From Macrostomum lignano (lineage: Eukaryota): a DNA stretch of 64,000 nt. Positions within the stretch are counted from its first letter, which is position 1; each line of letters begins with the position of its first letter. Both the position numbers and the translations under genes were made by a program. The stretch covers positions 434,001-498,000 of the forward strand of contig NIVC01000085.1 of the NCBI GenBank assembly GCA_002269645.1, in the 5' to 3' direction. Under the pieces are notes generated by a model that worked only from the letters and a program-made list of their open reading frames with translations, was not told the origin of the DNA and did no database searches. Shown here one piece after another: positions 4,444 through 56,200 of this stretch.

Positions 4444-7400
4444 GCAAAGTACCTTTTGCAATTTTTCAATCCGAGCCGGCTGACTGAGATCGGTGTCCGG
4501 GATGCACAGGCTCACCTGATACTGGCTCTTGTCCTCGTCTGCAATTTGTAGCGAGGCAAAAATACCTGTATCTACTAAATATATCCATGTAAAACATATT
4601 GAGTGATGAAATAGCGCTCTCACGAGGCAGCGGATCCTTGAAATAGATCCAGACATCTTGACCACCGCACAAGCTGCCTTCCGGAGGCAGCACCGAGTCA
4701 ATGTTGAGCTTCACCAGCTGCTCTGCGGTTTGATGAAGACAATTGAAAATAATCAAGTAATTAAGAGAATCTATAAGCTATAGCAGTTTAGACTAGAAGA
4801 ACTCACTGATATCGGAAACAACATCTGTGACTGCATTAGCAAATTGATGGGGACTGGCCTGCAGAGCGCCATCCTTGTCAACGAAGTGCAGCTGAAAGGC
4901 CAGTCTCAACTGGTTCAGGTTTCTAGACGTGTACTTCACGTCTTGCAAGTTCTCTGCAACAGGTTAGCGATTTGGTAACATAAATCTGCATGGGTTATGA
5001 CGTACATCAGCCCTAACAGGTCATGACCTTAGCCCCGAGTTTAGTGGCCCTAAAACTTTATTTATGGTTTATGGCATGTACACTTCACTGTGCCTTGGGT
5101 TGGCCCTCAAGCTGGGAGTTAATTGCACGAGCAGAGCCAAGCCGAGATTCCAATTCAGTCCCCAGATCAATGCGACTGCACTTTGGAATCGAGCCTGGGC
5201 CGCTGGTACATCAGACCACTGGGCAACCCCACATGCCCTTCGGTGACACCCGGTCGCTTTTGTTGCACGTTTCAGGAGCTAAATGAACTCAATGCAACTC
5301 ACTTCCATATGGATTGAAGCCGAGTTCGTTGCGTTTCCTAATTGCGGCAGCCAATTTTGCGCCAAGTTTGCCAACGCAAATTAGCGAAACCTTTTCTAAA
5401 CTGAAATTTATAATGAAAATTATCAAGTGTTATATATTTCGATACATATCGGTTGAGGTTTAAAATCTTTAATTGATAAATTTTCGATACATATCGGTAA
5501 GGTTAAAAAATTAATTGATTAACCTTTGATACATATCGGTTGAGGTTAAAAATCAAATTAATAAACTTTCGATACATATCGGTTGAGGTTTAAAATCTAA
5601 TTAATAAACTTTCGATACATATCGGTTGAGGTTTAAAATCTAATTAATAAACTTTTGATACATATCGGTTAAAGTTTAAAATCTAATTAATAAACTTTCG
5701 ATACATATCGGTTGAAGTTTAAAATCTAATTAAGATTGATTAACTTTCGATACATATCGGTTGAGGTTAAAAATCAAATTAATAAACTTTCGATACATAT
5801 CGGTTGAGGTTTAAAATCTAATTAATAAACTTTCGATACATATCGGTTGAGGTTAAAAATCAAATTAATAAACTTTCGATACATATCGGTTGAGGTTTAA
5901 AATCTAATTAATAATCTTTCGATACATATCGGTTGAGGTTTAAAATCTAATTAAGATTAATTAACTTTCGATACATATTGGTTGAGGATTAAAATCAAAT
6001 TAAGAAACTTTCGATACATATCGGTTGAGGTTTAAAATCTAATTAATAAACTTTCGATACATATCGGTTGAGGCCCGGTTGAAAAACTTAGCGGGCCTCA
6101 GTGGGCTTTTGAGCGGGCCATTAGCGGGCCGAAGCGAATCGGCCCGTATTACAGGCCTTTTACAACAAATTGGCCCGCTGAAACCCGGCCTGCTCTGAAG
6201 CCCGCTGATTAGCCCGCTAATGGCCCGCTCGAAACCGATCCGCAGATCGGCCCGCTGATTAGCCCGCTGGTTGGCCCGCTCACTGGCCCGTTCTAAACCG
6301 GCCCGCTGCGCGGCCCACTGCGCGGCCCACTGGTTGGCCCGCTGGTTGGCCCGTTCTAAACCGGCCCGCTGGTTGGCCCGTTGGTTGGCCCGCTCAATGG
6401 CCCGTTCTAAACCGGCCCGCTGGTTGGCCCGTTGGTTGGCCCGCTCAATGGCCCGTTCTAAACCGGCCAGCTGCTCGGCCCACTAGTTGGCCCGCTCACT
6501 GGCCCGCTGGTTGGCCCGTTCTAAACCGGCCCGCTGGTTGGCCCGCTCAATGGTCCGTTCTAAACCGGCCAGCTGCTCGGCCCACTAGTTGGCCCGCTCA
6601 CTGGCCCGTTCTAAACCGGCCCGCTGGTTGGCCCGCTGGTTGGCCCGCTCAATGGTCCGTTCTAAACCGGCCAGCTGCTCGGCCCACTAGTTGGCCCGCT
6701 CACTGGCCCGTTGTAAACCGGCCCGCTGGTTGGCCCGCTGGTTGGCCCGCTGGTTGGCCCGCTCAATGGTCCGTTCTAAACCGGCCCGCTGCACGGCCCG
6801 CTGGTTGGCCCGCTGATTGGCCCGTTCTTAACCGGCCCGCTGGTTGGCCCGTTGGTTGGCCCGCTCATTGGCTCACTCATTGACCCGTTGTAAACCGGCC
6901 CGCTGGTTGGCCCTCTGGTTGGCCCGCTGGTTGGCCCGTTCTAAACCGGCCCGCTGGTTGGCCCGCTGGTTGGCCCGCTCAATGGTCCGTTCTAAACCGG
7001 CCCGCTGGTTGGCCCTCTGGTTGGCCCGCTGGTTGGCCCGTTCTAAACCGGCCCGCTGGTTGGCCCGCTGGTTGGCCCGCTCAATGGTCCGTTCTAAACC
7101 GGCCCGCTGCACGGCCCGCTGGTTGGCCCGCTCACTGGCCCGTTCTAAACCGGCCCGCTGACTTGTTGTGAACGTAATAATCTTATCAAATGGTGTATAA
7201 ACTTGTACGTGTAAACTTTTGCGGTGTCTTGGCGCTCGGGCAATTATTTGATTTGTAGAGCACTAATGCTGTCCAATAAACTGTGCATACACAAATTTCA
7301 TGATGACATGTACAATGAGTGTGTCAATTTTATTTATTTTTATCGCCTTATACGCCCACAGCAATTTGTATATCGCGCTAAGTTGTGACGTATGTACTTC

Positions 7401-10400
7401 AGATATCACCCAGTTTAGTGTGAAACCATTGCTTCGCCCTTTGTTGGCTCTTGGGCTAAGATAGCAAACTGATTCAAACTGATAGTAGAATGATGGTATT
7501 TGTTAATTAACAATTTTAGTACGGATTCTCTCCTAGTCACACAGGTATTCAATTTCTTCATTTTCAGTCACTTGAACGACTAAAAGAGCTCGACAAGAAG
7601 TCAGTTGCCATCGCACGGCGCTTCAGTCGACTCAAAGAATCACTCAGACAGACAGTTGCGGCGACAGCCCGTCCGACACGAGCAGAAGCTTCAGTGAGCC
7701 ATTTACTAACTGCAACTCGGACCACTCATGACGTACCAACCACTCATGACGCGCAAACAAGCAACAGTGTAGCCAGTGTTGGCAGCAGCTGGCAGCCAGC
7801 ATTGGCAACAGGTGGATGTAGCAGTGGCGTCCAGACTCCCATGGTCGTCGAGCCTACCGGCTCGCAGTATTCAGACAACGACGATGAGGACGTATCTTCT
7901 AGATCTATCGTTGAGGAACCAGGCGAAGAAGCTCCAGATGACGACTATTGGAGTGGCGCTCCAATGGCGTTTGACGCCATCGAGCAGTGCGACGATTGTG
8001 AGGACTTCACTGAAGATGACCGCCCACCAGAGGATGAGGATGTACCGTGTGTTGGCAATGGAGCCACCCATAACCCAGAAGCTATGGATATGCAGCCGCG
8101 TATGAGAAATGGAGCCGCACTTTTCCTAGACTCTCCGTTGACCTACGATTCGTTTGCGGCCTATGTGCATTTGTTCAGCGAGCGCCAGTCTCTGCCAAGG
8201 AAAGGCATAGCTGACCTGCTTCGCCTCTTCCATGCAGCTGTGCCAGTCGGTAGCAACCTGCCTGGTAGTGTATATTTACTACGGAAAACAGTCCAGGCAT
8301 TCGCGAACGACTTTACATCGTCACCCCGACTGTTCTGTTCCTCCTGTAGTGCTGAGGTCACGTCAGCACAGGCTCAGAACCGTGAAAATTGCACTTATTG
8401 TAACAAGGAACTGTCGCCGGCCGGCGTATCCAAGTTTTATACCACCGACTTTAAATTGCAAATCAGACAGTTAATTGAACAGTGCCGGCTTCTACAGAGC
8501 GTAACTTTCCCTGTCGATTTGTCATCTGAAGATCGTAATTTTGTCTCAGTATCCAGTTGCGACGAGTATCGGCATTTCAAGCGTTCAGTTCGGCTACACT
8601 TGAAGCAAGATCTGTCGTATACTGTGAACATCGACGGCTTTCCAGTATTTGCAGACGCGCTGATGGAAATGTGCCCAGTGTACTTGAGTATCAACGAAGT
8701 ACACGAAGCAATGAAATCGCGTTTCATCGTCGTATGTGGTTTCTGGGCTGCAAAGTCGAAAGTCAAGACATCCACCTTCCTTCCCGGCCTTGTTAGAGAG
8801 CTGAATGAGCTCCGGTCTATCGGGATCACCTACAGCACAGGTGGTGGCACTGAAGGCGACGCGCCTGGTCTTCTTCGACTGCACCCGTACCTATTCGTCT
8901 TGGATGCCCCACAGAGAGCTGAGGTTGTCGGTCTAAAGCGTCACAATGCAGAGTTCGGCTGCGACAACTGCTATGTGAAGACGCAGAGATCATTGGGTGC
9001 CAATCGGTACCCAGTCAGTGGCAAAGAAGAGGCGGTTGCGCTGGCAACCGCAGTCGGTTGTATTACACCGCACGCTCGTAGCTTGCGAGACACGCGCCTA
9101 CTGGCGCACAACATCCCGGTCGGCAAGGACAACTATCTGGGCGTTATGTGCGTGTCAGTGTTGGACCAGTTAAACGGTTTCGACTACATGCATGGGTGTC
9201 CACCGTGTCTGCTTCATCAGTGCTATCTTGGACTCGTTCACTGGATTTTGAAACAGCTGTTTCATCCTAAGAAACCAGACATGTACCACGCGCATAACCC
9301 CAATCTAGTTTCGCGACGTGCAGATGTGGACCTTGCCTCTTCGCGGATTCACGTACCCCTGTCTCATCAACGTGCTCCCCGAAGTTTCCATGAACTCGGC
9401 ATGTTTCGGGGCCACGAACTTGAGGCATGGTTAATCGTCTACGGCCCTATGGTGATGGAAGGCATCCTGCCCGACCGCTACTACTGGCACCTTCAGCTAC
9501 TGTCCACGGCCATGTTCTGGCTTACATTGGATGGAGCGCCTCTAATGGAAGTGATAAAAGCCAGCCGGCTTCTGCACTACTTTTACAGTCAGCTGCCTCA
9601 GATGTACTCCAACATGGCCCTTACGTACAATGCACACCAAGTTTGTGAGCACTTTGTATCGTACGTAACTTTATACGGGCCAATGTGGAGGATGTCTGCG
9701 GGCTTGTTTGAGTCGTCGCATGCGAATCTTCGCACCAAAATTCACGGCTCCAGGAATGTTGACACCGAAGTTGCCGGCCTCCTACAGCGCCAATTGGCGC
9801 GAAGGCAAATGATGGCCGAATTGCAACTCCCCAACATCTTCAGCGAGGGACCACTAAATGGTGAGGTTCGACTGCCGGATGGTGTGCGACTGCGCAATCC
9901 TATTCGCCGCCAATTGGCGGGCGGTGACACACGGTATGGCAAAGCAGTACTGACCAGCGGGCTACGCATTGAAATATTCTTGCCTCGCCTGATCCACCAG
10001 CGCGCCGCCTCGTGCTTTGTTACTGTCCTCATCCCTAACTGTCGTCAGCCGTTTGAATTCGCAAGAATTGAGGAAATTCAACTCCGGGACAATTGCGCAT
10101 GGGTTCGCCTACGCCGCCTTCTGACTGTGGAGCCGCACGAGGACAATCATCCGTTGTACCGCTTGACTGGCGAACCGGACCACGGCGGATGCTCAGTCGC
10201 ACACGTTCGGCGCCTGCGTGCCAATCCATTTTGCGCAGTTGACAAATACTACTTCGAAATCCCTGCTAACGACGTACTCGCTACGTGTTGTGTGAACGAC
10301 CGCTACGTAGCATTCCTCCCCCATATTCAGTTTTCTTACGCAGCGTGAGAATTGTATGTACTCATTGTACGTAGGGTGTCCCAATAAGAAGGAAAAATCG

Positions 10401-13400
10401 TTGCACAGGCTTTCTGGTAAAACAATATAATTTCTTAGAACTCACATCACTATAGTAAGTAAACATTCGAAAGTTCTAAAGCTTTTTAAATTGAGTAGAA
10501 ATGTCACCTGTTCATTCAAAACTTATGACTACAGTTTACAACAAGGGGTGAGGGCTAGAGGACACCCTCGCTCAAACGGGACGGGATATGCCATAATTGC
10601 TCTTTTCCAGCATGCCTTCTTCAACTGTGTTTTGCTTTTATTGCTTTTTTATATAATATATATATTGCTTATACTGCTTACTACTGCACATTGCTATGTG
10701 GTATCATAGGAAATTATATTTATATTTAGTAACAAACGTCGGTCACATGACGTCTATATCCATATGTTGCCTTACTTTACGCCTTTATTTCTACCTGACA
10801 ATATAGTAGGTTACAACCGGTACGCAGCTGTCCTTTTGTTCCAATAATCGTGCACCTACTTCGCATTAATTTCAGTCGACCCACTGACAAAGAAGTACCG
10901 GCAAAAGAAACAAATAAACAAATTAAGATTAAGACATCAAAATGCCGGACCAGCAACCATGCCCCAAATGCAATTCGCGGGAATACTTCGCGTTCGCCGA
11001 CTATTGTTTTTTTTATCGCTCCTCTCACTGCGACGACTGTGAGGATGACATCCACGCAGCCCATGCCGAGCAGCAACGGCTAGTTAAATCGCGCGCCTGC
11101 AGCAACTGGGACGACGACTGTAGTGACGACGCCGGAGCTACAGTTGAGCCAGTCGGCTCGACCTGTGTCCCAGCTGCGTCTGCTGCCACAGGAGTAGTCA
11201 AACAGCTTCGCGACATGTCGTTGTACAACGAGCCTCTGAGCGATTCCGCTCAGCAGGCCGAAGGCACCCTCGGCGCGACGGGTCGTGTCGAGCCAACCGG
11301 CTCGACCTGTGCCCCAGCTGCGTCTGCTGCCACAGGAGTAGTCAAACAGCTTCGCGACATGTCGTTGTACAACGAGCCTCTGAGCGATTCCGCTCAGCAG
11401 GCCGAAGGCACCCTCGGCGCGACGGGAAATTACTCTGGCATTTGCGGTCGGTGCAGTGAGCTGTACGCGAATGGAAAAAACTGGCCATACTGCTGGCATA
11501 CAGATATGCAGACGTTCATGACTGCTGCTTCTTACAAACTACGGCAGTATGAGTCTGAACACAGCATACTATTTTCGGACAGCATGCGCAATGCCATCTT
11601 GACACTAGTTTGTGTCTTTATCTTTCTGTGGTCCCGGGGATGCGAAACAACGTGCTGGACTAATGCAGTCCGCACGTTGTATTCGCACCTCAGAGACAGC
11701 GGAATCGTAGACGCGCCGGCTGGCGCGAAGACCGAGTTGTCGCTCGACGCCCAGGCCATCTTCGACCGAGCCGTGAGCACCGTTAATGAGCACGCCGGAT
11801 CCGCCGGTGTCACGCCACCGGTGCAAAATCGGGTCAAGGTGCTGAAAAAGTCAAGGCGACGCGGTCGAGCTGCCCAGGAGTACCGGCTGGTGTACTTAGG
11901 ACATAAATCGAATGTCCTATACATGACTCTGGCCGTCGCCATTGTAGGGACGTGGGCGGCCTATGTGCGGTTTAAGTAATTAATGTAGGCCACGTTAGTA
12001 ATTCCGGAACGTGTAGTTAGCCGCAGCTTCAATCACTAGTCGTTTCTGCCCACCACAATTAAGAGAGTATAACAGAATATAGAGTTTATTGAATCTGATT
12101 AGATTCCGCTTAAACCGTACAAAGACCGCCACGTTTTAGAAAGAGCACGGCAATTTGGAGAAATTGGACAAATTGGCCCTTTGAAATCGAGCCAGTCGGC
12201 TCGATTTCAAAGGGGACGGGATATGCCATAATTGCTCTTTTCCAGCATGCCTTCAACTGTGTTTTGCTCATATTGCTTATATTGCTCATATTGCTAATAC
12301 TGCTTATATTGCTTACATTGCCTTTGTATTGATTATATTGCTTTCGCACTGCTTATTTAGTTTATATTGCTTACTTTGCTCATATATACATATATATATA
12401 CGATTTGTGGCGTATACAGGCCAATCAGGTCAATCATCGTTCGTTCACTAATCAAGTTTGTCAAGCGTCTCTACTTACTAGTAACGTAATAGTAATAAAT
12501 AGTTAACAATTTCCCACTGCACAGCCCAGCAGCATGGTATTGATTCTCCAAGCTCAGATGTGTGTCGGACAAACTTGCGTGTGCATAACAGACGACATAT
12601 ACTTGCTTTTCAGACATGTCGAACGACCTGAGCCCTAGAGGAGTTAACTTCTCCGCCATCATGGCAAGAGGCGCATGCGTCCACTGACGGGTGCTAGCGC
12701 CGGGCCGTCTAACACACGGGATAAGAAGCTGTAGGCAGCATAGGCTGTACGTCACTGTTAAATAATTGACAATATTGTACTGTAACTACTCTATTAGATC
12801 TAGATCTATTTATATAAATACTTCTAGTCGAGCCAGCCGGCTCAATGTCATGAGTAGTGTAGCGAGTACTACTATAGTAGCGCTTCTCCCAGCAGTAGCT
12901 TGCCAGCTTCCATGCCATCAACGTCTCATAGCTAAAGTATACTTGCGTCGACTTGTCAGCGTCGATTGCACATAGAAGATGCACAGGCGTTGCATTTTTC
13001 GTTATGGAATTCAATATCCTTCCTTACTTTCATTAGCATGACACTGACGCATGCTTGCGTCATATGACGCATGTCATATGAAACCGCATTTAGAAAGAAA
13101 CCTTTCCCGCTCCATTGCAGAATAATGGGAGACGGAAAGAAGACAGATAGAATGAATAAGAAGAAGAGGGATCACGAGAATCGGGCCGAAAAAGAGAAGC
13201 GGAAAGATAAAGATGCCAATACTGGCCTAACAACTGCAGCTGCTGACGTCCAGGAAAATCCTGCTGAGCTGAATGGCGACGGCAGAGATGAGCCCACGAC
13301 GCTCCCTAAAGCCCACGACGCCACTTCAACGGCGCTAATCGGCTCCGATATGAGCACGGCCGTGTCCGCGGAGCCGACCGGCTCTACTACAAAACGGAAA

Positions 13401-16400
13401 GCCGAAGCCAATGCCGATAGGCATCGGCATCGCGAATCTCTATCTGACTCATCGAGCGAGCCAGATCTAGAGTCGAGAAAGGAGATGCGGCATCGCAATA
13501 GGGCCGGTGGACCACCAAAGGCTAAGGCGCCCCGTGTCATGGTCATCCACAAAGCTATTTGGTGGGTGCTCACGTACACTAACACCGGCAAAGTTATGGC
13601 CATCGACCAAAAGTGCATCGTCGACCCGGACCCCGTAACACGAACAGTCGGCGTTAAAGTACAAGTACGGACTGGCCATAGCCCGAGTGCAAAAACTTTC
13701 GACGCTTTCCTGACAGCCGGGCCTTTTCCGGATAGGAAGTCCGCCTACGCTGCCCGGGACAACCTGGCCAAATCGGCAACTTTAATGGGGTCGGGCTCTG
13801 CAGGCGCCTATAGGCGCGTGCAACCCGTTATAAATCACCCTGATGCCGGATGCCCGCGCTGCCGGAACCTCGACATCGAATGTCGTGACCTACGTGAGGC
13901 AAATCGAGAAGAGACGGACAAGCGGGGGGCTGCTGAAACTGATGCAGCCAACCTGAAGATTGAGAATGAGGCCATTCGGTCTGAGAATGAGCAGCTGAAA
14001 CAGGAACTGGCACAGAAAGATGACGTGCTGCAAAAGTATGACACCCGTCTTGCAAGTTCCATGCATGCGAATTCTCAGATACTTGAGACGCTACGGTTCG
14101 TCACGGCGCAGGCGCGGTCGGCCAACGAGGTGGCACGTAGAACTACAGAATCATGCAGCCACCTCGAAAGTCTGGTGCGCTCTATTAGTGACTACGAAAC
14201 GTTGGTCGCTGGTTCGAGTACTGCACCCGGAGAGTCGTCATCAGCTGCTGCCGATATCGGCATCGATGCCGAGCCAAGTGGCTCGACGTCATCGCAGCTT
14301 ACCAGTGGATTTGTGAGCCACGCCATTGCGACGGCAATCGCAAATATATCGACCTCCATGATGGGCAACCAGTCGTCGAAACGTGTGCCGCTGATAGCTG
14401 CATTTCCCGGTGTCACGGTTTGTCCGTTGGCCCTGACAAAATTGGAAGCCGCAGCAGTTGAAATGCGAAAAGCCGCAAACAATAACAAGATTCGCAGACG
14501 AGCCATTCGGCTAGTCATACTTGCTGTGTGCCCTGAGCAAGACCTGCGAACCGCATCTTGGGCTGGTCGACAGGTGAAAGGAGAGAAAGCGGCCAACCGG
14601 GTTGAGCTGGATAGCTCCAAGAAGGCGGCCATACGGTCCTACCTGGCCAGTAAACTGGTCTCAGAGGAGGACAAAAAACTATTCACAGACGCCGAACTCG
14701 GCGAGGTCTTCCGCCGTACAGCCAGGACCGTACGGGATCGGGAGAGTTCGTCTGCGAAAAGTGGCGCCTGCGCAGAAAATGAAGAGGAAAGCGAGTAGTA
14801 GAGACTAGGCCTCGATTGTGGTGACAATTTTTCACTATGCTGACAAACATTACTTTGGGTTGAGAATAGACTCTGAGGCTAGGGTTGCTCTTTTATATAT
14901 TAGCTCTTTTAGCTCAGATAGCTCTATTAGCTATATTAGCTCTTTTAGCTATTCGTGCCACCATGAAAAAATACTAGTATTCAATTTTAACCTTAACATC
15001 TCTTTGTTTTTACCAGATCCGATGAAGTATATTCCCGGTTTTTATAAAAAAGCTAATTGTACGGCTCATCGGTCTGACTTAGAAATCTCATGCTTATTTT
15101 GCTTCTTTACTTATTTTTTTTGTTCGTTCAGCGGGCCAACCAGAGGGCCGGTTTAGAACGGGCCAACCAGCGGGCCAACCAACAGGACAGCCAGCGGGCC
15201 GGTTTAGAACGGGCCAATGAGCGGGCCAGCCAGCAGGCCGGTTTACAACGGGTCAATGAGTGGGCCAGTGAGCGGGCCAACCAGCGGGCCAACCAACGGG
15301 CCAACCAGCGGGCCGGTTTAGAACGGGCCAACCAGCGGGCCAACCAACGGGCCAGCCAGCGGGCTGGTTTAGAACGGGCCAATGAGCGGGCCAGCCAGCA
15401 GGCCGGTTTAAAACGGGTCAATGAGTGGGCCAGTGAGCGGGCCAACCAACGGGCCAGCCAGCGGGCCAAACAACGGGCCAGCCAGCGGGCCGGTTTAGAA
15501 CGGGCCAGTGAGCGGGCCAGCCAGCGGGCCAACCAACGGGCCAACCAGCGGGCCGGTTTAGAACGGGCCAGTGAGCGGGCCAGCCAGCGGGCCAACCAAC
15601 GGGCCAACCAGCGGGCCGGTTTAGAACGGGCCAATGAGCGGGCCGGTTTAGAACGGGCCAATGAGCGGGCTGGTTTAGAACGGGCCAATGAGCGGGCCAG
15701 CCAGCAGGCCGGTTTACAACGGGTCAATGAGTGGGCCAATGAGCGGGCCAACCAACGGGCCAACCAGCGGGCCGGTTAAGAACGGGCCAATCAGCGGGCC
15801 AACCAACGGGCCAACCAGCGGGCCGGTTTAGAACGGGCCAATGAGGGGGCCAATCAGCGGGCCAGCCAGTAGGCCGGTTTAGAACGGGCCAATGAGCGGG
15901 CCAGCCAGCAGGCCGGTTTACAACGGGTCAATGAGTGGGCCAATGAGCGGGCCAACCAACGGGCCAACCAGCGGGCCGGTTAAGAACGGGCCAATCAGCG
16001 GGCCAACCAACGGGCCAACCAGCGGGCCGGTTTAGAACGGGCCAATGAGGGGGCCAATCAGCGGGCCAGCCAGTAGGCCGGTTTAGAACGGGTCAATGAG
16101 TGGGCCAGTGAGCGGGCCAACCAACGGGCCAGCCACCGGGCCAAACAACGGGCCAGCCAGCGGGCCGGTTTAGAACGGGCCAACCAGCGGGCCAGCCAGC
16201 GGGCCCAAAAGCGGGCCGTGGAACGGGCCGATTTGAGAGACTCGTTGATTTGGAAAAATGAGCGGGCTTTTAGAGCGGGCTTTTCTGACACGAAGTGGCC
16301 GATGAGCGGGCCAATTTCAATGGGCTAATCCAGTATTTTTTTCAACCGGGAGGTTTAAAATCTAATTAATAAACTTTTGATACATATCGGTTAAAGTTTA

Positions 16401-17903
16401 AAATCTAATTAATAAACTTTCGATACATATCGGTTGAAGTTTAAAATCTAATTAAGATTGATAAACTTTCGATACATATCGGTTGAGGTTAAAAATCAAA
16501 TTAATAAACTTTCGATACATATCGGTTGAGGTTTAAAATCTAATTAATAAACTTTCGATACATATCGGTTGAGGTTAAAAATCAAATTAATAAACTTTCG
16601 ATACATATCGGTTGAGGTTTAAAATCTAATTAATAATCTTTCGATACATATCGGTTGAGGTTTAAAATCTAATTAAGATTGATTAACTTTCGATACATAT
16701 CGGTTGAGGTTAAAAATCAAATTAATAAACTTTCGATACATATCGGTTGAGGTTAAAAATCAAATTAATAAACTTTCGATACATATCGGTTGAGGTTAAA
16801 AATCAAATTAATAAACTTTCGATACATATTGGTTGAGGATTAAAATCAAATTAAGAAACTTTCGATACATATCGGTTGGGGTTTAGAATCTATTTGAGAC
16901 TTTCAATTGAAATTTTCAATATATATCGGTGATGTTAAAAATAATTTATAAACTTTCGATACATATCGGTTGAGGTTAAAAATCAAATTAATAAACTTTC
17001 GATACATATCGGTTGAGGTTTAAAATCTAATTAATAATCTTTCGATACATATCGGTTGAGGTTTAAAATCTAATTAATAATCTTTCGATACATATCGGTT
17101 GAGGTTTAAAATCTAATTAAGATTGATTAACTTTCGATACATATCGGTTGAGGTTAAAAATCAAATTAATAAACTTTCGATACATATCGGTTGAGGTTTA
17201 AAATCTAATTAATAAACTTTCGATACATATCGGTTGAGGTTAAAAATTAAATTAATAAACTTTCGATACATATCGGTTGAGGTTAAAAATCAACTTAATA
17301 AACTTTCGATACATATCGGTTGAGGTTTAAAATCTAATTAATAAACTTTCGATACATATCGGTTGAGGTTAAAAATCAAATTAATAAACTTTCGATACAT
17401 ATTGGTTGAGGATTAAAATCAAATTAAGAAACTTTCGATACATATCGGTTGGGGTTTAGAATCTATTTGAGACTTTCAATTGAAATTTTCAATATATATC
17501 GGTGATGTTAAAAATAATTTATAAACTTTCGATACATATCGGCGCACTAAAATTCAAAACCAATTACAACAAACCTGACAGTCATCTCAGTCGCCGTAAC
17601 AGGGCGTCGATAACAAAACAGGCCGTTTGGTTCGCAGTTATCCCCAGCCATGTAGTAAGGGTGCGGATAGAGCTCCGGATTCACTGTGCCACCTAGAACG
17701 ACAATCTCTTTATGCCTGTCGGGATCCAGGCCAGTAATCCGCAGTCGGACACAGCTGGATTTTCCACCAGACCGGCCATAGAGCAGGCCGCCCAGACGGC
17801 TGCCCGGAGCCTCAGATTCGTAGCGAAATCTGTGATGACTGGCCGGCTGCTCCAGTACAGAGATTGACGGCCAGTCACAGGGCTGCTGCTGCTCTGCCGA
17901 CAT
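3825..17903 (-). CDS. Rel/NF-kB-like RHD-IPT gene E (~358 aa), intron 1 interrupted by a transposon
   Basis: Exons 17575-17903 ([15 protein letters not shown]...GGLLYG...[10 protein letters not shown]), 5303-5400 (LEKVSLICV...GFNPYG), 4807-4953 (LRLAFQL), 4624-4722 ([18 protein letters not shown], cf. NF-kB IPT GSCLGGDEIFLL), 4453-4538, 4035-4218 (HLLSIVTP) and 3825-3958 (SKRKRP NLS, stop TAA). All GT-AG and frame-compatible. Confidence 0.9.
4253..4441. repeat. (GACA)n/(CATA) microsatellite in intron 5 of gene E
   Basis: Direct tetranucleotide repeat. Confidence 0.97.
5438..6073. repeat. ~43-bp AT-rich satellite (GATACATATCGGTTGAGGTTTAAAATCTAATTAATAAACTTTC), left part
   Basis: Tandem units; resumes at 16351 after the transposon. 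Confidence 0.95.
6090..7160. repeat. Left subterminal repeat array (GGCCCGCTGGTT / GGCCCGTTCTAAACC modules)
   Basis: Dozens of GGCCCG-cored modules; reverse complement of the array at 15128-16320. Confidence 0.92.
7490..10348 (+). CDS. EnSpm/CACTA-like DDE transposase (~928 aa if the short 5' exon is used)
   Basis: The frame is open from 7520 to the stop at 10346-10348. Motifs: CxxC...CxxC Zn finger, [11 protein letters not shown] (D1), LDAPQRA (D2), GCDNC, CLLH (C/DxxH), [14 protein letters not shown] (E). Predicted ATGATG|GT donor at 7490-7497 and TTTTCAG acceptor ending 7567 are in phase; this 5' exon is inferred. Confidence 0.9.
10942..11979 (+). CDS. Transposon ORF2, 345 aa, unknown function (Cys-rich N-terminus, internal duplication, C-terminal hydrophobic tail)
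   Basis: ATG-initiated, GC-rich and uninterrupted. CPKC...HCDDC and CGRC...CWH motifs, a 144-bp-period in-frame duplication, and ends [21 protein letters not shown]. Confidence 0.7.
   Translation: MPDQQPCPKCNSREYFAFADYCFFYRSSHCDDCEDDIHAAHAEQQRLVKSRACSNWDDDCSDDAGATVEPVGSTCVPAASAATGVVKQLRDMSLYNEPLSDSAQQAEGTLGATGRVEPTGSTCAPAASAATGVVKQLRDMSLYNEPLSDSAQQAEGTLGATGNYSGICGRCSELYANGKNWPYCWHTDMQTFMTAASYKLRQYESEHSILFSDSMRNAILTLVCVFIFLWSRGCETTCWTNAVRTLYSHLRDSGIVDAPAGAKTELSLDAQAIFDRAVSTVNEHAGSAGVTPPVQNRVKVLKKSRRRGRAAQEYRLVYLGHKSNVLYMTLAVAIVGTWAAYVRFK
13071..14798 (+). CDS. Transposon ORF3, ~556-575 aa, coiled-coil plus C-terminal BEN-domain-like DNA-binding protein
   Basis: Long intact ORF with a coiled coil (~13870-14160). 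The C-terminal [21 protein letters not shown]...[14 protein letters not shown]...[11 protein letters not shown] fits the BEN pattern (LLxxxFxxExLxxxSxxG...LDxxKxxAI). The start may be the ATG at 13126. Confidence 0.75.
   Translation: MSYETAFRKKPFPLHCRIMGDGKKTDRMNKKKRDHENRAEKEKRKDKDANTGLTTAAADVQENPAELNGDGRDEPTTLPKAHDATSTALIGSDMSTAVSAEPTGSTTKRKAEANADRHRHRESLSDSSSEPDLESRKEMRHRNRAGGPPKAKAPRVMVIHKAIWWVLTYTNTGKVMAIDQKCIVDPDPVTRTVGVKVQVRTGHSPSAKTFDAFLTAGPFPDRKSAYAARDNLAKSATLMGSGSAGAYRRVQPVINHPDAGCPRCRNLDIECRDLREANREETDKRGAAETDAANLKIENEAIRSENEQLKQELAQKDDVLQKYDTRLASSMHANSQILETLRFVTAQARSANEVARRTTESCSHLESLVRSISDYETLVAGSSTAPGESSSAAADIGIDAEPSGSTSSQLTSGFVSHAIATAIANISTSMMGNQSSKRVPLIAAFPGVTVCPLALTKLEAAAVEMRKAANNNKIRRRAIRLVILAVCPEQDLRTASWAGRQVKGEKAANRVELDSSKKAAIRSYLASKLVSEEDKKLFTDAELGEVFRRTARTVRDRESSSAKSGACAENEEESE
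15128..16320. repeat. Right subterminal repeat array (CAGCGGGCC / GGTTTAGAACGGGCC modules)
   Basis: Inverted counterpart of 6090-7160. Confidence 0.92.
16351..17543. repeat. ~43-bp AT-rich satellite, right part
   Basis: Same unit as 5438-6073. Confidence 0.95.
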
Positions 17904-50248: not shown

Positions 50249-53200
50249 GATTTCGAAGGCTGGGTAGGCAGAGGCTTTAACTGCTGATCAATCGATGAAG
50301 AAGCTGACGAAGTTGAAGCTCTTTGCTGCGGATGCTGATGATGATGCTTGCGACGACGCTGGGGTTTACCGTTACCTGTAGCAGTGGAGGTGCCTGCATT
50401 GCTGGTAAAGGCTGTCCAAGACCTTCTCTGCTGTTGCTGCTGTTGCTGCTGCTGCTGCTGCTGGCTGGACAGATCTTCCGTCAAAGACTGGCGGAGCTGC
50501 TGCTGCTGCTGCTGATGCTGCTGCAAATGCGACGAAACCTGGCGAATACCAATCGGAGGACTCGATTGGCAGGCAACGGCCGTTTTCATTGGCTGAGGCG
50601 GCTGACGATGCAGCGACTCCCTAGACGACGTGTTGGACTCGGAGCTGCCTCCGGTGTCGCTGGGAGTCGCCGTTGCGCCGCCGCTGCCGCCGCCGCCCAG
50701 CTGACCTCGCCGGTGACGATGATGTCGATGGCGGCGCCGCTGCCGTTGCTGCGACAGTCGCTGGTGTTGCTGAAGCCACGAAGCCGACGATGCCGCGTCG
50801 CTATCGTTGCTATGGTGATGATGATTGTTAGAGTCCATGGCAACCGCAGCGGCGGAGGAGGACGGAGCATCAACTGGAGTGCTGACGCTTCTCATGTGAG
50901 CGACTGCTGCAGTGGAGGACGCGGAATTGTCGTGCGCTGCTGCCGAGGCTGCGGTTGCCAAGCTGAGGGATGGCCTCATTATCAGCATGTTATTCATTAG
51001 CCTAGGCGGATGCTGAGACTGGGAAGCAGATGAAGCTGACGTTGGTAGGCGCTTGCTGACGCCTACGAGGAGGTGAGGTGGTATTAGGTGATAGTGGTTA
51101 TATTCCATGGTTATATTCTATGATTATATTTTATGATTATATTCCATGGTTATATTCAATGATTATATTTTATGATTATATTCCATGGTTATATTCCATG
51201 ATTATATTCTATGATTATATTCTATGGTTATATTCTATGATTATATTCTATGATTATATTCTATGATTATATTCTATGATTATATTCCATGGTTATATTC
51301 TATGATTATATTCCATGGTTATATTCTACGATTATATTCCAGGGTGTTATTCTATGGTTAATTGATTATCATTTGTGCTTCTATTTTATGACACATGCGG
51401 CCGGCCCGCAAAGTCTCTCTTATCCGGCCCTCGGGTCCTTTGAAACTTCAGCTCAAGGTTTGTGTCTCTTCTCAACTCGCTTCTCTCACCCCTCTCCCCC
51501 TCGTCTCATATCTCATCTTTTTCCTCTCGCAAAAACAGCGCTTACCAGGGCAGGTCACAATCGAAGTCTGCTGAATCGTTGATCCTCCACCGCCGCGTCG
51601 CCTTCGAGTTGGCGCCGAGCTCGGGTGCTGCCCACCGCCACCGCTGCCTGCGGTGTTCGTCGAAGAACCTCCAACTCCGGTGGCACCACCTGAATTGTCC
51701 AATTCCTCATCAAGCGTGGGAGTTCTCCGATGCTGCTGCTGCTGCTGCTGCAAATCAAATCTTCGACTCCGATTGGAGCTGCAGGTGGAGCCGCTGTGGT
51801 GGCTGGCGACATCGTCTGCCGGATTGCTGTTGGAGCCCGCCGAGGCCACCGCTGCGCGAGGGGATTTAGGGGACGGATTACAGGGATAGCATCGTTTTTA
51901 GAGGTTAGATAATTATGATCCGTATGCTCATGATATGGGTCATTTGGTGTGTGGGTCATAGGATATTTGGGTCAAGGGTCACAACGTCAAAGGATGGTTA
52001 AGGTCATTGTATATTTGTGTTGCAAGATTTTCCGGTCATAAGATATTGGGTCATGAATTGGATCAGAAGATATTTTGGTCATGGAGTATAATATTAAGGT
52101 CATTGAATATTTTTCGATCATGGAATGTTTAAGACATGAGATTTTGAGTCGAGGATTGGCCATAATATTTGGATCATAAGATATTGGTCATCGACTATTT
52201 GGGTCATAAATTGGGTCATACAATATTTGAGTCATAGATTCGGTCATGGGATATACAGGCTCTGGAAAAACATTACAACAGAAAAATGAAAATGAAACAA
52301 AATCCAATGCAATAAATCTATTTGCATTATCAGTAAAATTAAGCCACAAAATACCTCTAATTAACTAAAATTGGGTTTAAACAACATATTGCTAAACTAT
52401 AGAAACAATTATTTAAAAAGCCAATGAAGGAGCAACACTGACACAAAATCAAAATATAGGAATTAAAGGGATTAGACTAGTAATCTTATAAAAAGGCGTT
52501 GGCCAGTACTTGACAGGGGCTTGGCCTGGGCGCCAGTGGTACACAGGTACATGGCTGATGGGGCGTCAGTCTGTAGACAGCAGCTGACTTTGGTAACGCC
52601 GCTGGAAGACGGGGGCGCCTCAGCGATCTGCAACGACTGCTGCTGCAGCTCCTGCAACTGCAGCTCCAGAGCTGCGATGTCTGCGAAATTGAAATGCATA
52701 CTTAGCCACATTTTCCCAGGTTCAATAATCTGATACTGGCATGCATTATTAAAAATATGGCTTTATTTAACAAAATAATCACCATAGATCTAGTAGCCGT
52801 GATCACCAACAGGGGAATTCCCTTGAATTGTCCACCAACAGGGGAATTTCCCTGAGTTGTCCATCAACAGGAGAATTTCCCTGAATTGTCCACCAACAGG
52901 GGAATTTCCCTGAATTGTCCACCAACAGGGGAATTTCCCTGAATTGTCCATCAACAGGAGAATTTCCCTGAATTGTCCACCAACAGGGGAATTTCCCTGA
53001 ATTGTCCATCAACAGGAGAATTTCCCTGAATTGTCCACCAACAGGGGAATTCCTCTGAATTGTCCATCAACAGGGGAATTTCTCTAAATTTTCCACCAAC
53101 AGGAGAATTTCCCTGAACTGTCCACCAACAGGAGAATTTCTCTAAATTTTCCACCAACAGGAGAATTTCCCTGAATTGTCCATCAACAGGGGAATTCCCC

Positions 53201-56200
53201 TGAATTGTCCACCAACAGGGGAATTCCTCTGAATTGTCCACCAACAGGGGAATTTCCCTGAATTGTCCATCAACAGGAGAATTTCTCTAAATTTTCCACC
53301 AACAGGAGAATTTCCCTGAATTGTCCATCAACAGGGGAATTCCCCTGAATTGTCCACCAACAGGGGAATTCCTCTGAATTGTCCACCAACAGGGGAATTT
53401 CCCTGAATTGTCCATCAACAGGGGAATTCCCCTAAATTGTCCACCAACAAGGGAATTCCCCTAAATTGTCCTCCAACAGGGGAATTCCCCTGAATTGTCC
53501 ACCAACATGGGAATCCCCCTGAGTTTTTTCACGAACAGGGGAATTCCCCTGAGTTTTCCACGAACAGGGAATTCCCCTGAGTTTTTCACGAACAGGGAAT
53601 TCCCCTGAGTTTTCCACGAACAGGGGAATTCCCCTGAGTTTTCCACGAACAGGGAATTCTCCTGAGTTTTTCAGGAACAGGGAATTCCCCTTGAGTTTTT
53701 CCACGAACAGGGAATTCCCCTGAGTTTTTCACGAACAGGGAATTCTCCTTGAGTTTTTCCACGAACAGGGAATTCCCCTGAGTTTTTCACGAACAGGGAA
53801 TTCCCCTGAGTTTTCCACGAACAGGGAATTCCCCTGAGTTTTCCACGAACAGGGAATTCTCTTAAATTGTCCACCAGTGGGCCCGGGATTTCCCTGAACT
53901 GTCCACCAACAAGGGATTTCTATTAATTGTCTACTAACATGGGGATTCCTCTAGATTGTCTTGTGACGGGGAATTCCCTTGAACTTTCCACCCACAAAGA
54001 ATAAAAAAGTTCGAACTGGGAATTTCCCCAAATAGCCCATCAACAAGAGATTCTACAAACATCCGGTGTCCAACAGATGATTCAGTGTCCTTCAAATTGT
54101 CCGTGAACAGGGGAATCGCGATTTCCCAAAGCAACAGGAGGCCTCACCGTCCTCTCTCCCGGCGCCGCCGCCGCCGCTCTGCAGGCAGCCCTGGTTGCAG
54201 AGGCCGGTCAGTTCGTCGTGCAGCTGCCCGAAAGCCGGCCGCCGCTCCGGCTCCCACAGCCAGCAGAGCCGCATGAGCTGGTAGACAGAGTCCGGACAGC
54301 CGGGTGGCTTGTCCATGCGGTAGCCGCTCTCTAGCAGCTGGTACACCTGGGGAGCGGGAGGCAGTGAAATTGATTAAATTAATGTGGGATAAAATCCCTT
54401 TTATCAATTATATCCAACATATTTTAAGCATAAATGAGTTCTCTGTTCTGATCCAACAGGACTCCGATTCTAAATCATGTATCTACTAAACTCCAAATCC
54501 TGAATCTTAGCCCTAATGTTATCCCACACCCTGAAGATAAATATCCCACACCCTGAAGATAAATATCCCACACCCTGAAGATAAATATCCCACACCCTGA
54601 AGATAATAACCCACACCCTGAAGATATTGTAAATATCCCACACCTTAAAGATAAATAACCCACACCCTGAAGATAAACATCCCACACCCTGAAGATAAAC
54701 AACCCACATCCTGAAGATAAACATCCCACATCCTGAAGATAAACATCCCACACCCTGAAGATAAACATCCCACACCCTGAAGATAAACAACCCACATCCT
54801 GAAGATAAACATCCCACACCCTGAAGATAAACATCCCACACCCTGAAGATAAACAACCCACATCCTGAAGATAAACATCCCACATCCTGAAGATAAACAT
54901 CCCACATCCTGAAGATAGATTATATTTCAACACAGTAGAAAAGAATCCCAAATAGCCAATTTACTCGCCTGAGTCAGCTCAATATTGGGGTACGGCGAAC
55001 AACCATACGTAGCAATCTCCCATAGCAACACACCGAAAGACCAAACATCTGATTGGCTATTGAACCGATTATAAGCCAGACTCTCTGGCGCTGTCCACTT
55101 GATGGGGAATTTCGCGCCCCGTCTAGCAACATAGACATCTGAGTCGCCTTCCAGACAGCGGGTGAGGCCGAAGTCAGCCACCTTCACCACGGAGCCGTCG
55201 CTGACCAGGCAGTTGCGGGCGGCCAGGTCGCGATGAACAAACCGGTGCTGCTCCAGATAGGCCATGCCGCTGGCCACTTGGCTGGCCATGTAGAGCAGCA
55301 CAAAGGGCCGGAGTTCGAGTCGGCGATTTCTTAGAAAGTCTAACAGATTGCCGTGCGGCATGAACTCGGCGATGATGTAGTAGGGAGCTTCTCTGGTGCA
55401 CACGCCTGCGGGGCGGTGGAATGTGGGTCAGTAGTGGGTCAGTGTGTCAGTCAGTGGGTCGGTCAGTCAGTTTACTCACCAAAAAGCTGTACCAGATTCT
55501 CGTGATGCAGCCGTTTCATCACTTGAGCCTCGGCTAAGAATTCGTTCACCTTGGAGATCATTTCCTCCTGTGCGGTTTGAAGACAGGAAAAAAAAGAACG
55601 ATAATTTTTTGTTTAATTTCAAAATTTCTAAAGGCTATGAATAAATTTTCAGAAACAAGCGCAGGAGGGAAGCCGAAAACGGAAGCGGAAAGGGGATGAG
55701 CGGGAGCGGAAGAGAGGAATGGAAGTGGGGACTGAAGTGGATGCAGAAGTGGGGGCGGAAGAGGGGCGGAAGTGGGGGCGGAAGAGGGGCGGAAGTGGGG
55801 GCGGAAGAGGCCAGCGGAAGAGAACAGTGGTAAAAAGGGAGCGGAAGAATAGAGCGAAAGAGGGGAGCGGAAAATGGGGTGGAGGGGAGCGGAACAGAGA
55901 GCGGAAGAAGGGAGCGGAAAATGGGGTGGAGGGGAGCGGAACAGAGAGCGGAAGAGGGGAGCGGAAAATGGGGTGGAGGGGAGCGGAACAGAGAGCGGAA
56001 GAAGGGAGCGGAAAATGGGGTGGAGGGGAGCGGAACAGAGAGCGGAAGAGGGGAGCGGAAAATGGGGTGGAGGGGAGCGGAACAGAGAGCGGAAGAAGGG
56101 AGCGGAAAATGGGGTGGAGGGGAGCGGAAAATGGGGTGGAGGGGAGCGGAACAGAGAGCGGAAGAAGGGAGCGGAAAATGGGGTGGAGGGGAGCGGAAAA

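Follow-up and report, generated by a model that had tools for sequence, protein, structure and literature searches.

Why does one short palindrome recur through the genes and spacers of a single transposon? The palindrome is GAGCC-N4-GGCTC (GAGCCNNNNGGCTC), and the transposon is a whole DNA element of the flatworm Macrostomum lignano (6074..16350 on the + strand, 10,277 bp; CACTA/Mirage/Chapaev-like), inserted in a satellite repeat within a 64-kb stretch of contig NIVC01000085.1 (hereafter the window, to which all coordinates refer). No second copy of the element was found in the window, and all results on the dyads rest on this single copy. An exact scan returned seven sites, at 7850, 11146, 11290, 12189, 12830, 13371 and 14271, in agreement with every coordinate listed in an earlier note made from the letters of this DNA. 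All seven lie between the terminal inverted repeats (TIRs) of the element (6074-16350) and none in the remaining ~54 kb of the window, so that the objection raised in the note, that the motif might be equally common in host DNA, does not hold there. Its statement that the motif lies far above chance was borne out as well: 0.05 copies are expected per 64-kb window in dinucleotide-preserving shuffles, 0 of 100 shuffles reached seven, and zero copies appeared in 100 simulations under a second-order Markov model of the element interior (7150-15130). Allowing a single mismatch added only the site at 14500 (eight matches with at most one mismatch against 1.46 expected, seven of them being the exact copies). 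Among the 13 GGCTC pentamers of the interior, seven are paired with GAGCC at exactly N4, and the broader class GCC-N4-GGC is found 16 times against 2.8 expected. The flanks of the motif tend to GTC on the left and GAC on the right, each side independently, and the extended dyad consensus is GTCGAGCC-N4-GGCTCGAC with the centre ARYC.

Five of the seven copies are located in the three open reading frames (ORFs) of the element. The first (7850..7863, gtcGAGCCtaccGGCTCgca) is found in ORF1, the transposase, 9 nt past the first in-frame ATG, where it is read V-E-P-T-G-S. The second (11146..11159, gttGAGCCagtcGGCTCgac, read V-E-P-V-G-S-T) and the third (11290..11303, GTCGAGCCaaccGGCTCGAC, with 8-bp arms) open the two units of a 144-bp tandem duplication in ORF2 (11143-11282 and 11287-11426, 97% identical), each unit beginning 3 nt ahead of the motif; the proposal that the motif marks the start of the duplication was therefore correct, and with the non-independent third copy discounted there remain six independent copies, as had been counted, four of them coding. 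The sixth (13371..13384, gcgGAGCCgaccGGCTCtac, A-E-P-T-G-S-T) and seventh (14271..14284, gccGAGCCaagtGGCTCgac, A-E-P-S-G-S-T) lie in ORF3, the latter as the last of three abutting 14-bp palindromes (14249, 14258 and 14271). The fourth and fifth copies are non-coding. Copy 4 is contained in a 38-bp palindrome (12177..12214) with an AGTC centre, whose 17-nt arms (12177-12193 and 12198-12214) proved to be perfect, as previously described; it begins 198 nt past the ORF2 stop, upstream of an AATAAA at 12494, and is probably part of the ORF2 3' untranslated region (UTR). Its 3' arm overlaps the start of a repeat termed D5, its left arm is an inverted copy of that start, and a stretch of 16 nt is identical between the 11146 and 12189 copies. 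Copy 5 (12830..12843, gtcGAGCCagccGGCTCaat) is located 10 nt downstream of the end of a TATA-like box (TATATAAATA, 12811-12820), at an ORF3 transcription start that is predicted from the distance to this box. Two duplicated segments, the ORF2 tandem unit and D5, have motif copies at their borders. The one-mismatch site (14500..14513, GAGCCattcGGCTA), in codon phase 1 (R-A-I-R-L) within the BEN-like domain of ORF3, may be a chance occurrence.

The motif is constrained at the level of nucleic acid and not by a peptide preference. The coding copies are the only EPxGS peptides in the three ORFs, and all five are in codon phase 0, which agrees with the single frame noted earlier. Each uses GAG for Glu, GGC for Gly and TCN for Ser, with zero synonymous change at the fixed bases and all variation limited to the N4 centre (the third base of Pro and the entire x codon); the free synonymous change that the earlier note would have taken as a sign of a mere EPxGS preference is thus absent. 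With the codon usage of the element (GAG 0.56, GGC 0.49, TCN 0.65), an EPxGS peptide matches the DNA motif with a probability of ~0.18, which gives ~1e-3 for the four independent coding copies. The coding copies sit in Ser/Asp/Glu-rich, linker-like segments, and the V and T residues that recur beside the peptide correspond to the palindromic extension GTC...GAC. A purely peptide-level explanation is unlikely because of the fixed codons, the two non-coding copies (12189 and 12830), the flanks that extend the palindrome and the pairing of GGCTC with GAGCC.

GAGCC-N4-GGCTC belongs to a population of about 40 short 14-bp dyads, among which it is the most frequent. The element interior has 45 perfect 5-N4-5 inverted repeats (arms of 5 nt around a spacer of 4 nt) against 8.4 ± 3.1 expected, the maximum in 100 second-order Markov simulations being 17. 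Their arms are diverse: GAGCC occurs seven times and GCGCC four times, and the others are single except for two arms in the ORF2 duplication and an AT-repeat. The excess is almost confined to perfect palindromes (45 against 12); those with one mismatch number 149 against 137. When only maximal runs were counted, spacer 0 (27 against 7.8) and spacer 4 (27 against 5.8) were enriched, while spacers 2, 6 and 8 were at chance. Odd spacers are at expectation (11 and 12 palindromes with 3- and 5-nt spacers, respectively, against ~8.4). The spacer-0 excess peaks at 14-bp perfect palindromes (12 against 0.5), and the stem lengths of the palindromes peak at 5 with a tail to 17. Palindrome density is alike in coding and non-coding DNA (5-6 per kb), and 43 of the 45 palindromes fall in a zone at 9035..14828, with 9 against 1.3 expected in the C-terminal half of ORF1, 8 against 1.0 in ORF2, 11 against 1.1 in the spacer between ORF2 and ORF3, and 11 against 1.6 in ORF3; the first 1.9 kb of the interior is not above chance. 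Base composition was rejected as the cause: complementarity does not vary with lag (~0.25), enrichment is limited to spacers 0 and 4, and mirror controls yield counts of 10-18. Tandem repeats were likewise rejected for the interior; the spacer-4 peaks that they do explain are at 18 kb and 52-54 kb, outside the element. The excess disappeared when synonymous codons were shuffled within the ORFs (2.8, 1.9 and 2.1 expected where 10, 8 and 11 are found; none of 300 shuffles gave as many), and codon or peptide bias was thereby rejected as well. A 9-bp register is shared with direct repeats and is not separable from codon periodicity.

In ORF1 the palindromes overlie conserved, ungapped transposase residues in the paralogue alignment, the exception being the one at 9907 (CCGCCAATTGGCGG, 9907-9924), located in six inserted residues that all paralogues lack. 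This palindrome is similar to GCGCCAATTGGCGC (9787-9804), 120 bp further upstream, and looks like a copy of a short palindromic patch. Sister dyads of the form GCGCC-N4-GGCGC are present at 9094, 9787, 11713 and 13804 (zone 9094..13817, together with CCGCCAATTGGCGG at 9907) in three different codon phases. Overlapping palindromes with shared arms form chains of alternating orientation at 14249-14284, 13047-13077, 9035-9059 and 13411-13427; the first of these, TGCCGatatCGGCAtcgaTGCCGAGCCaagtGGCTC, reads TGCCG-atat-CGGCA-tcga-TGCCG and then continues into a GAGCC dyad. No single reading that we tested accounts for the whole 5-N4-5 excess, which is the most striking observation at this locus and which, at about five times expectation, points to a new constraint on transposon sequence or to an element-specific mutational process that makes palindromes.

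Within the loci examined, the motif is specific to this element. For comparison we used a 23.6-kb locus carrying a paralogous M. lignano transposase (L001, 44% identity) and two metagenomic loci (L003 and L004, 36-37% identity). All three were without the GAGCCNNNNGGCTC motif, without a palindrome excess and without a detectable ORF2 or ORF3, and the idea that motif and excess are shared by the whole transposase clade, or belong to the host genome in general, was therefore rejected. Exact-product look-ups for ORF1 (three starts), ORF2, ORF3 (two starts) and the UniRef relative of ORF1 described below (P0001) gave no match, the 34-nt core of D5 was absent from the metagenome contigs searched, and a profile-based locus search in metagenomes returned no confirmed relative. 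Within the genus, the genomes of M. cliftonense and M. hystrix have been described (PMC10468722).

It is quite possible, though short of probable, that the motif is a dyad site in duplex DNA for a putative dimer encoded by the element itself, with ORF3 as the candidate, serving autoregulation and/or bridging to the subterminal repeats. A dimer of such a protein would bind GTCGAGCC-N4-GGCTCGAC and could let the element sense the level of its own protein; the dyad at the predicted ORF3 transcription start would then be an autorepressor operator, and in coding DNA the DNA motif would dictate the (V/A)-E-P-x-G-S-T peptide and not the reverse. A further effect of binding might be to link the interior with the subterminal repeats; their core, CGGGCC, is one transition away from the internal half-site CGAGCC. 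The lack of motif and excess in relatives without ORF2 and ORF3 was counted in favour of an element-encoded binder. If the operator reading is true, this would be an animal CACTA-type transposon with an accessory DNA-binding protein and with operators written over the element's own coding sequence; it would combine dual coding and self-regulation of a transposon in compact form, in a flatworm with transgenesis.

The best candidate for the binder, ORF3 (13071..14798, + strand, probable start ATG 13125), is an orphan with a basic N-terminus, a coiled coil (~13941-14045) and, directly downstream, a BEN-like helical C-terminus (~14424-14759). A single-sequence AlphaFold (AF2) model of its C-terminal 170 residues has a mean predicted local distance difference test (pLDDT) score of 61, with a helical core at 70-85; the model of residues 139-290 (pLDDT 44) was too poor for use. 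In a Foldseek comparison of the C-terminal model with the PDB, four BEN-DNA complexes (NACC1, Insv, Bsg25A and BANP) were among the top 12 matches (target-normalised template modelling score 0.46-0.51, E 1-5), and among viral models (BFVD) the top named match was a bracovirus BEN protein (E 0.1-0.3). The earlier note had assigned ORF3 a BEN domain; sequence searches of Pfam and the PDB found none, and the fold comparison weakly suggests one, which makes ORF3 a plausible, putative dimeric BEN-like binder. In a paralogous transposase of 1314 residues with 42% identity to ORF1 (P0006), the C-terminus carries, through fusion or mis-joining, a CxxC region, then a coiled coil and a Pfam BEN match below threshold (E 0.006); ORF3 has its parts in the same order, which suggests that BEN-like partners recur in this transposase clade. 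Transcription is repressed by BEN homodimers (Insv, Elba1 and Elba2), which bind to short palindromes, CCAATTGG among them (PMC4281564). The element shares with these BEN-solo repressors a short perfect dyad and the inner geometry CC-N4-GG, its candidate binder would likewise act as a homodimer of an all-helical domain and as a repressor, and two of its 14-bp palindromes (9787 and 9907) hold an exact CCAATTGG (at 9790 and 9910). It differs in that the main motif has another sequence, without CCAATTGG and with a free centre, in that the sites lie inside transposon genes, and in that ORF3 fails the Pfam BEN model and is BEN-like by a weak fold match. The count of CCAATTGG is 2 against 1.5 expected window-wide, with 45 of 100 shuffles giving at least 2.

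A functional parallel is maize En/Spm (CACTA), where TnpA binds 12-bp subterminal motifs. Both elements are of CACTA/CMC type (for CACTA/Mirage/Chapaev), duplicate 3 bp of their target, have extended arrays of subterminal repeats and carry accessory gene(s) in addition to the transposase; in both a short motif occurs many times, inverted pairs are preferred and promoter-near sites give, or in M. lignano would give, autoregulation. The M. lignano dyads, however, are internal and lie over the coding sequence of all three ORFs, the subterminal core CGGGCC is related but not identical to the internal half-site, the putative binder is BEN-like and unrelated to TnpA, and the termini are CCCGG and not CACTA.

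Several results weigh against an operator bound by an ORF3 dimer. About 30 other perfect 5-N4-5 palindromes have unrelated arms, beyond what a single sequence-specific binder would recognise. The isolated ORF3 C-terminus has no match to Pfam PF10523 even at E <= 10 and none by PDB sequence search, and the structural likeness comes from a model of pLDDT 61 with Foldseek E-values of 0.1-5, which are non-significant. The 17-bp arms at 12189 have the look of RNA structure, as does a G:U-containing hairpin that stands at the equivalent position behind ORF1. The ORF3 transcription start is predicted from the TATA-like box alone, and one copy of the element stands behind the whole reading. Finally, the four independent coding copies share one phase (chance ~0.04), whereas the other coding palindromes are distributed 5/5/12 across the phases; this may reflect a secondary constraint on the peptide, or else a shared origin of the coding copies from a 21-bp in-frame patch, and for this reason the peptide reading keeps a small probability. 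With regard to the alternatives in the earlier note, an element-encoded operator or an RNA hairpin, a real, element-specific constraint on nucleic acid is upheld and a dimer is a reasonable candidate binder, its BEN membership and its binding being putative; the site may act as DNA or as RNA.

A smaller but serious possibility is that the unit under selection is a small stem-loop in transcripts or single-stranded DNA, with a stem of at least 5 bp and a 4-nt loop, GAGCC being the commonest of ~40 selected hairpins that would act, for example, in RNA processing, in stability or in binding a hairpin-binding factor. In its favour is an excess that is diverse in sequence, with stems peaking at 5 and reaching 17, that depends on synonymous choice and that lies over transposase positions which are conserved and ungapped. 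Predicted folding gives the 12189 copy -31.2 kcal/mol (z -6.4), the 11146 and 11290 copies reach z -3.6 and -4.4, the flanking -1/+1 position gives a sixth pair in six of seven copies when G:U is allowed, and a 9-bp stem with two G:U pairs stands at the equivalent spot before D5 in the ORF1 3' region. The hairpin energetics (nearest-neighbour parameters), however, hardly separate 3-, 4- and 5-nt loops, and loops of 3 and 5 nt are not enriched; the enrichment at spacers 0 and 4 only fits a symmetric dimer on duplex DNA better than it fits hairpin thermodynamics. Single mismatches at spacer 4 are without strand bias, G:U (G·T in the DNA) not exceeding A·C on the + strand (28 against 28, with small counts per centre). 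Three of the seven copies fold like shuffles (z -1.1 to -1.9), the minimum free energy structure at 13371 bypasses the motif, the 12830 copy probably precedes the transcription start or coincides with it, and seven identical arms out of 1024 possible would also require sequence specificity. No Rfam family was identified, the sole match being MIR2646 over the 38-bp palindrome, with 23 bits against a gathering score of 245 (E 0.12). A resemblance to the histone stem-loop was rejected, since that stem-loop has its arms the other way round (GGCTCT...AGAGCC) and Rfam gave no match. We prefer a duplex site to a hairpin because of the strict spacing, the balanced mismatches, the weak folding of three copies, the seven identical arms, the half-site consensus, the position of the 12830 copy, the likeness to the TIR core and the 15 GCC-N4-GGC units of the right TIR.

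It is rather unlikely that the palindromes are functionless by-products of an element-specific process that makes them, such as template switching or fold-back synthesis in post-excision gap repair, followed by short-patch copying in which GAGCC was copied most often. Short template-switch mutations create hairpins through clustered substitutions; perfect short inverted repeats like the palindromes described here can result, inside and outside coding sequence and with the length unaltered. In line with such an origin are the equal coding and non-coding densities, the overlapping chains with shared arms, the 16-nt identity between 11146 and 12189, the 9907 palindrome in its 6-residue insertion and its resemblance to 9787, the motif copies at the borders of duplicated segments (the ORF2 unit and D5), and the left arm at 12189 that is an inverted copy of the D5 start. 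Template switching, however, gives no reason for a strict parity and spacing of 0 or 4 only, for one arm recurring seven times or for restriction to a single element. Most ORF1 palindromes overlie ungapped conserved residues, each implying several coordinated, protein-preserving substitutions, and the excess is in the perfect class, the one-mismatch class being hardly raised. The first 1.9 kb of the interior is without excess, although the same repair would affect it, and the paralogous transposon in the same genome shows nothing. The Rickettsia palindromic elements, which are inserted in frame in protein genes, offer a further parallel, as there too a palindromic repeat occurs in one reading frame of unrelated proteins and in non-coding DNA; those elements are bacterial, 100-150 bp long and genome-wide, whereas the unit found here has 14-20 bp, is confined to one eukaryotic transposon and, in most ORF1 palindromes, is not an insertion.

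We give an equally low probability to a broader form of selection, in which an element-encoded factor (a 5-N4-5 dimer or a tetraloop-hairpin protein) imposes a second layer of information, so that ~40 dyads would be kept by selection across genes and spacers with the GAGCC form preferred. If this were true, the dyads would label DNA or RNA as 'self', be it for regulation, for synapsis or for protection against silencing by the host.

That the dyads are sites for a dimeric transcription factor of the host, captured for expression of the element, is very unlikely. Candidates would be an AP-2-like factor, AP-2 recognising GCC-N3/4-GGC, or a host BEN-solo protein. In line with a host factor are the enrichment of GCC-N4-GGC, the motif copy beside the TATA-like box and the two 14-bp palindromes that contain the Insv site CCAATTGG (PMC4281564). 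Such sites, however, are expected in promoters and not across three coding regions, none is found in the 54 kb of flanking host DNA or in the 23.6 kb of the other M. lignano locus, and the count of CCAATTGG is non-significant window-wide. Least probable of all is a short linear motif, (V/A)-E-P-x-G-S-T, acting for example as a docking or modification site in all three proteins with the palindrome incidental to it: the common frame, the linker-like locations and the recurrent V/A and T residues speak for it, but ~82% of the codon combinations that preserve the peptide would destroy the DNA motif, two copies are outside coding DNA, the V and T codons are themselves the palindromic extension, and other palindromes encode unrelated peptides in all phases.

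The element that carries these dyads is bounded by a perfect 13-bp inverted repeat (CCCGGTTGAAAAA and TTTTTCAACCGGG) and flanked by a 3-bp target duplication, AGG, at 6071-6073 and 16351-16353; excising it in silico restores the satellite unit. The satellite at the insertion has a unit of ~50 bp and is AT-rich (..aaactttcgatacatatcggttgaggtttaaaatctaattaat..; 5990-6073 and 16351-16500). The left TIR (6074..7160, ~1.1 kb) consists of tandem 12-15-nt subrepeats with 56 copies of the core GGCCCG, and the right TIR (15127..16350) holds 66 copies of the core CGGGCC and 15 GCC-N4-GGC units (GCCAGCGGGC). Both the subterminal repeat arrays and the 3-bp target-site duplication are as found in the CMC group, where 2-4 bp, typically 3 bp, are duplicated. 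Because relatives of ORF1 lie near the Transposase_21/tnp2 cut-off and the element has the 3-bp duplication and subterminal arrays, we class it as CMC-type; CACTA or CACTG termini are absent, the ends being CCCGGTTGAAAAA and its complement (CCCGG), which fits the wider superfamily and not CACTA proper. ORF1 (7694..10348, + strand) is open upstream to a TTTTCAG acceptor at ~7566, with the first in-frame ATG at 7841. It has 4921 relatives and itself no Pfam match; of three distant relatives compared with PF02992 (Transposase_21/tnp2), one, with 28.6 bits, scores exactly at the cut-off, and the other two, with 26.3 and 23.8 bits, fall short of it. An M. lignano protein in UniRef (P0001) shares 99% identity with ORF1. 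This protein, named 'Guanylate cyclase domain-containing protein', is a chimeric gene model in which TIR subrepeats are translated, followed by the N-terminal half of the transposase (6074-9200). ORF2 (10942..11979, + strand) is an orphan of 345 residues with N-terminal CxxC motifs, the 48-residue tandem duplication described above and hydrophobic C-terminal segments. Homology searches with ORF2 and ORF3 found no homologues.

AATAAA sites are present at 10913 and 12494, and a pyrimidine-rich CAG acceptor precedes each ORF (7556-7700, with the acceptor at ~7566, 10870-10875 and 13112-13120), which together suggest three transcription or processing units in the element. The ORF1 frame, open to the acceptor at ~7566 without an ATG before 7841, would fit spliced-leader trans-splicing or an upstream exon. 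In M. lignano, spliced-leader trans-splicing and operons are widespread, with ~30% of genes trans-spliced (PMC8629364). The repeat D5 occurs twice on the + strand: copy 1 (10572..10619, 48 nt, ending in CTCTTTTCCAG) is preceded by the 9-bp hairpin with two G:U pairs (10546-10573), and before copy 2 (12207..12254, 98% identical to copy 1), partly overlapping it, stands the 38-bp palindrome. A homology between the two 3' regions that lead up to these hairpins was rejected (z = 0.2). After both ORF1 and ORF2 the D5 module is followed by tandem 9-mers (TGCTYATAT; arrays at 10633-10700 and 12256-12393), and a similar TAGCTNNNT array is found after ORF3 (14880-14950). The D5 modules and 9-mer arrays are probably 3'UTR or intercistronic signals. 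Sequences resembling the cAMP response element (CRE), (C)ATGACG(T/C), are located upstream of or at the start of each ORF (7721-7756, 10745-10757 and 13047-13080), those before ORF3 forming three overlapping palindromes (TGACGCAtgctTGCGTCAtatGACGCA); they are possibly promoter elements. Outside the element, the unit of a satellite at 52660-53630 contains a perfect palindrome (AGGGGAATTCCCCT), GGGGAATTCCCC resembles a symmetric kappaB-type site, and a second, small tandem array at 18.15-18.30 kb has CATGA-N4-TCATG units.

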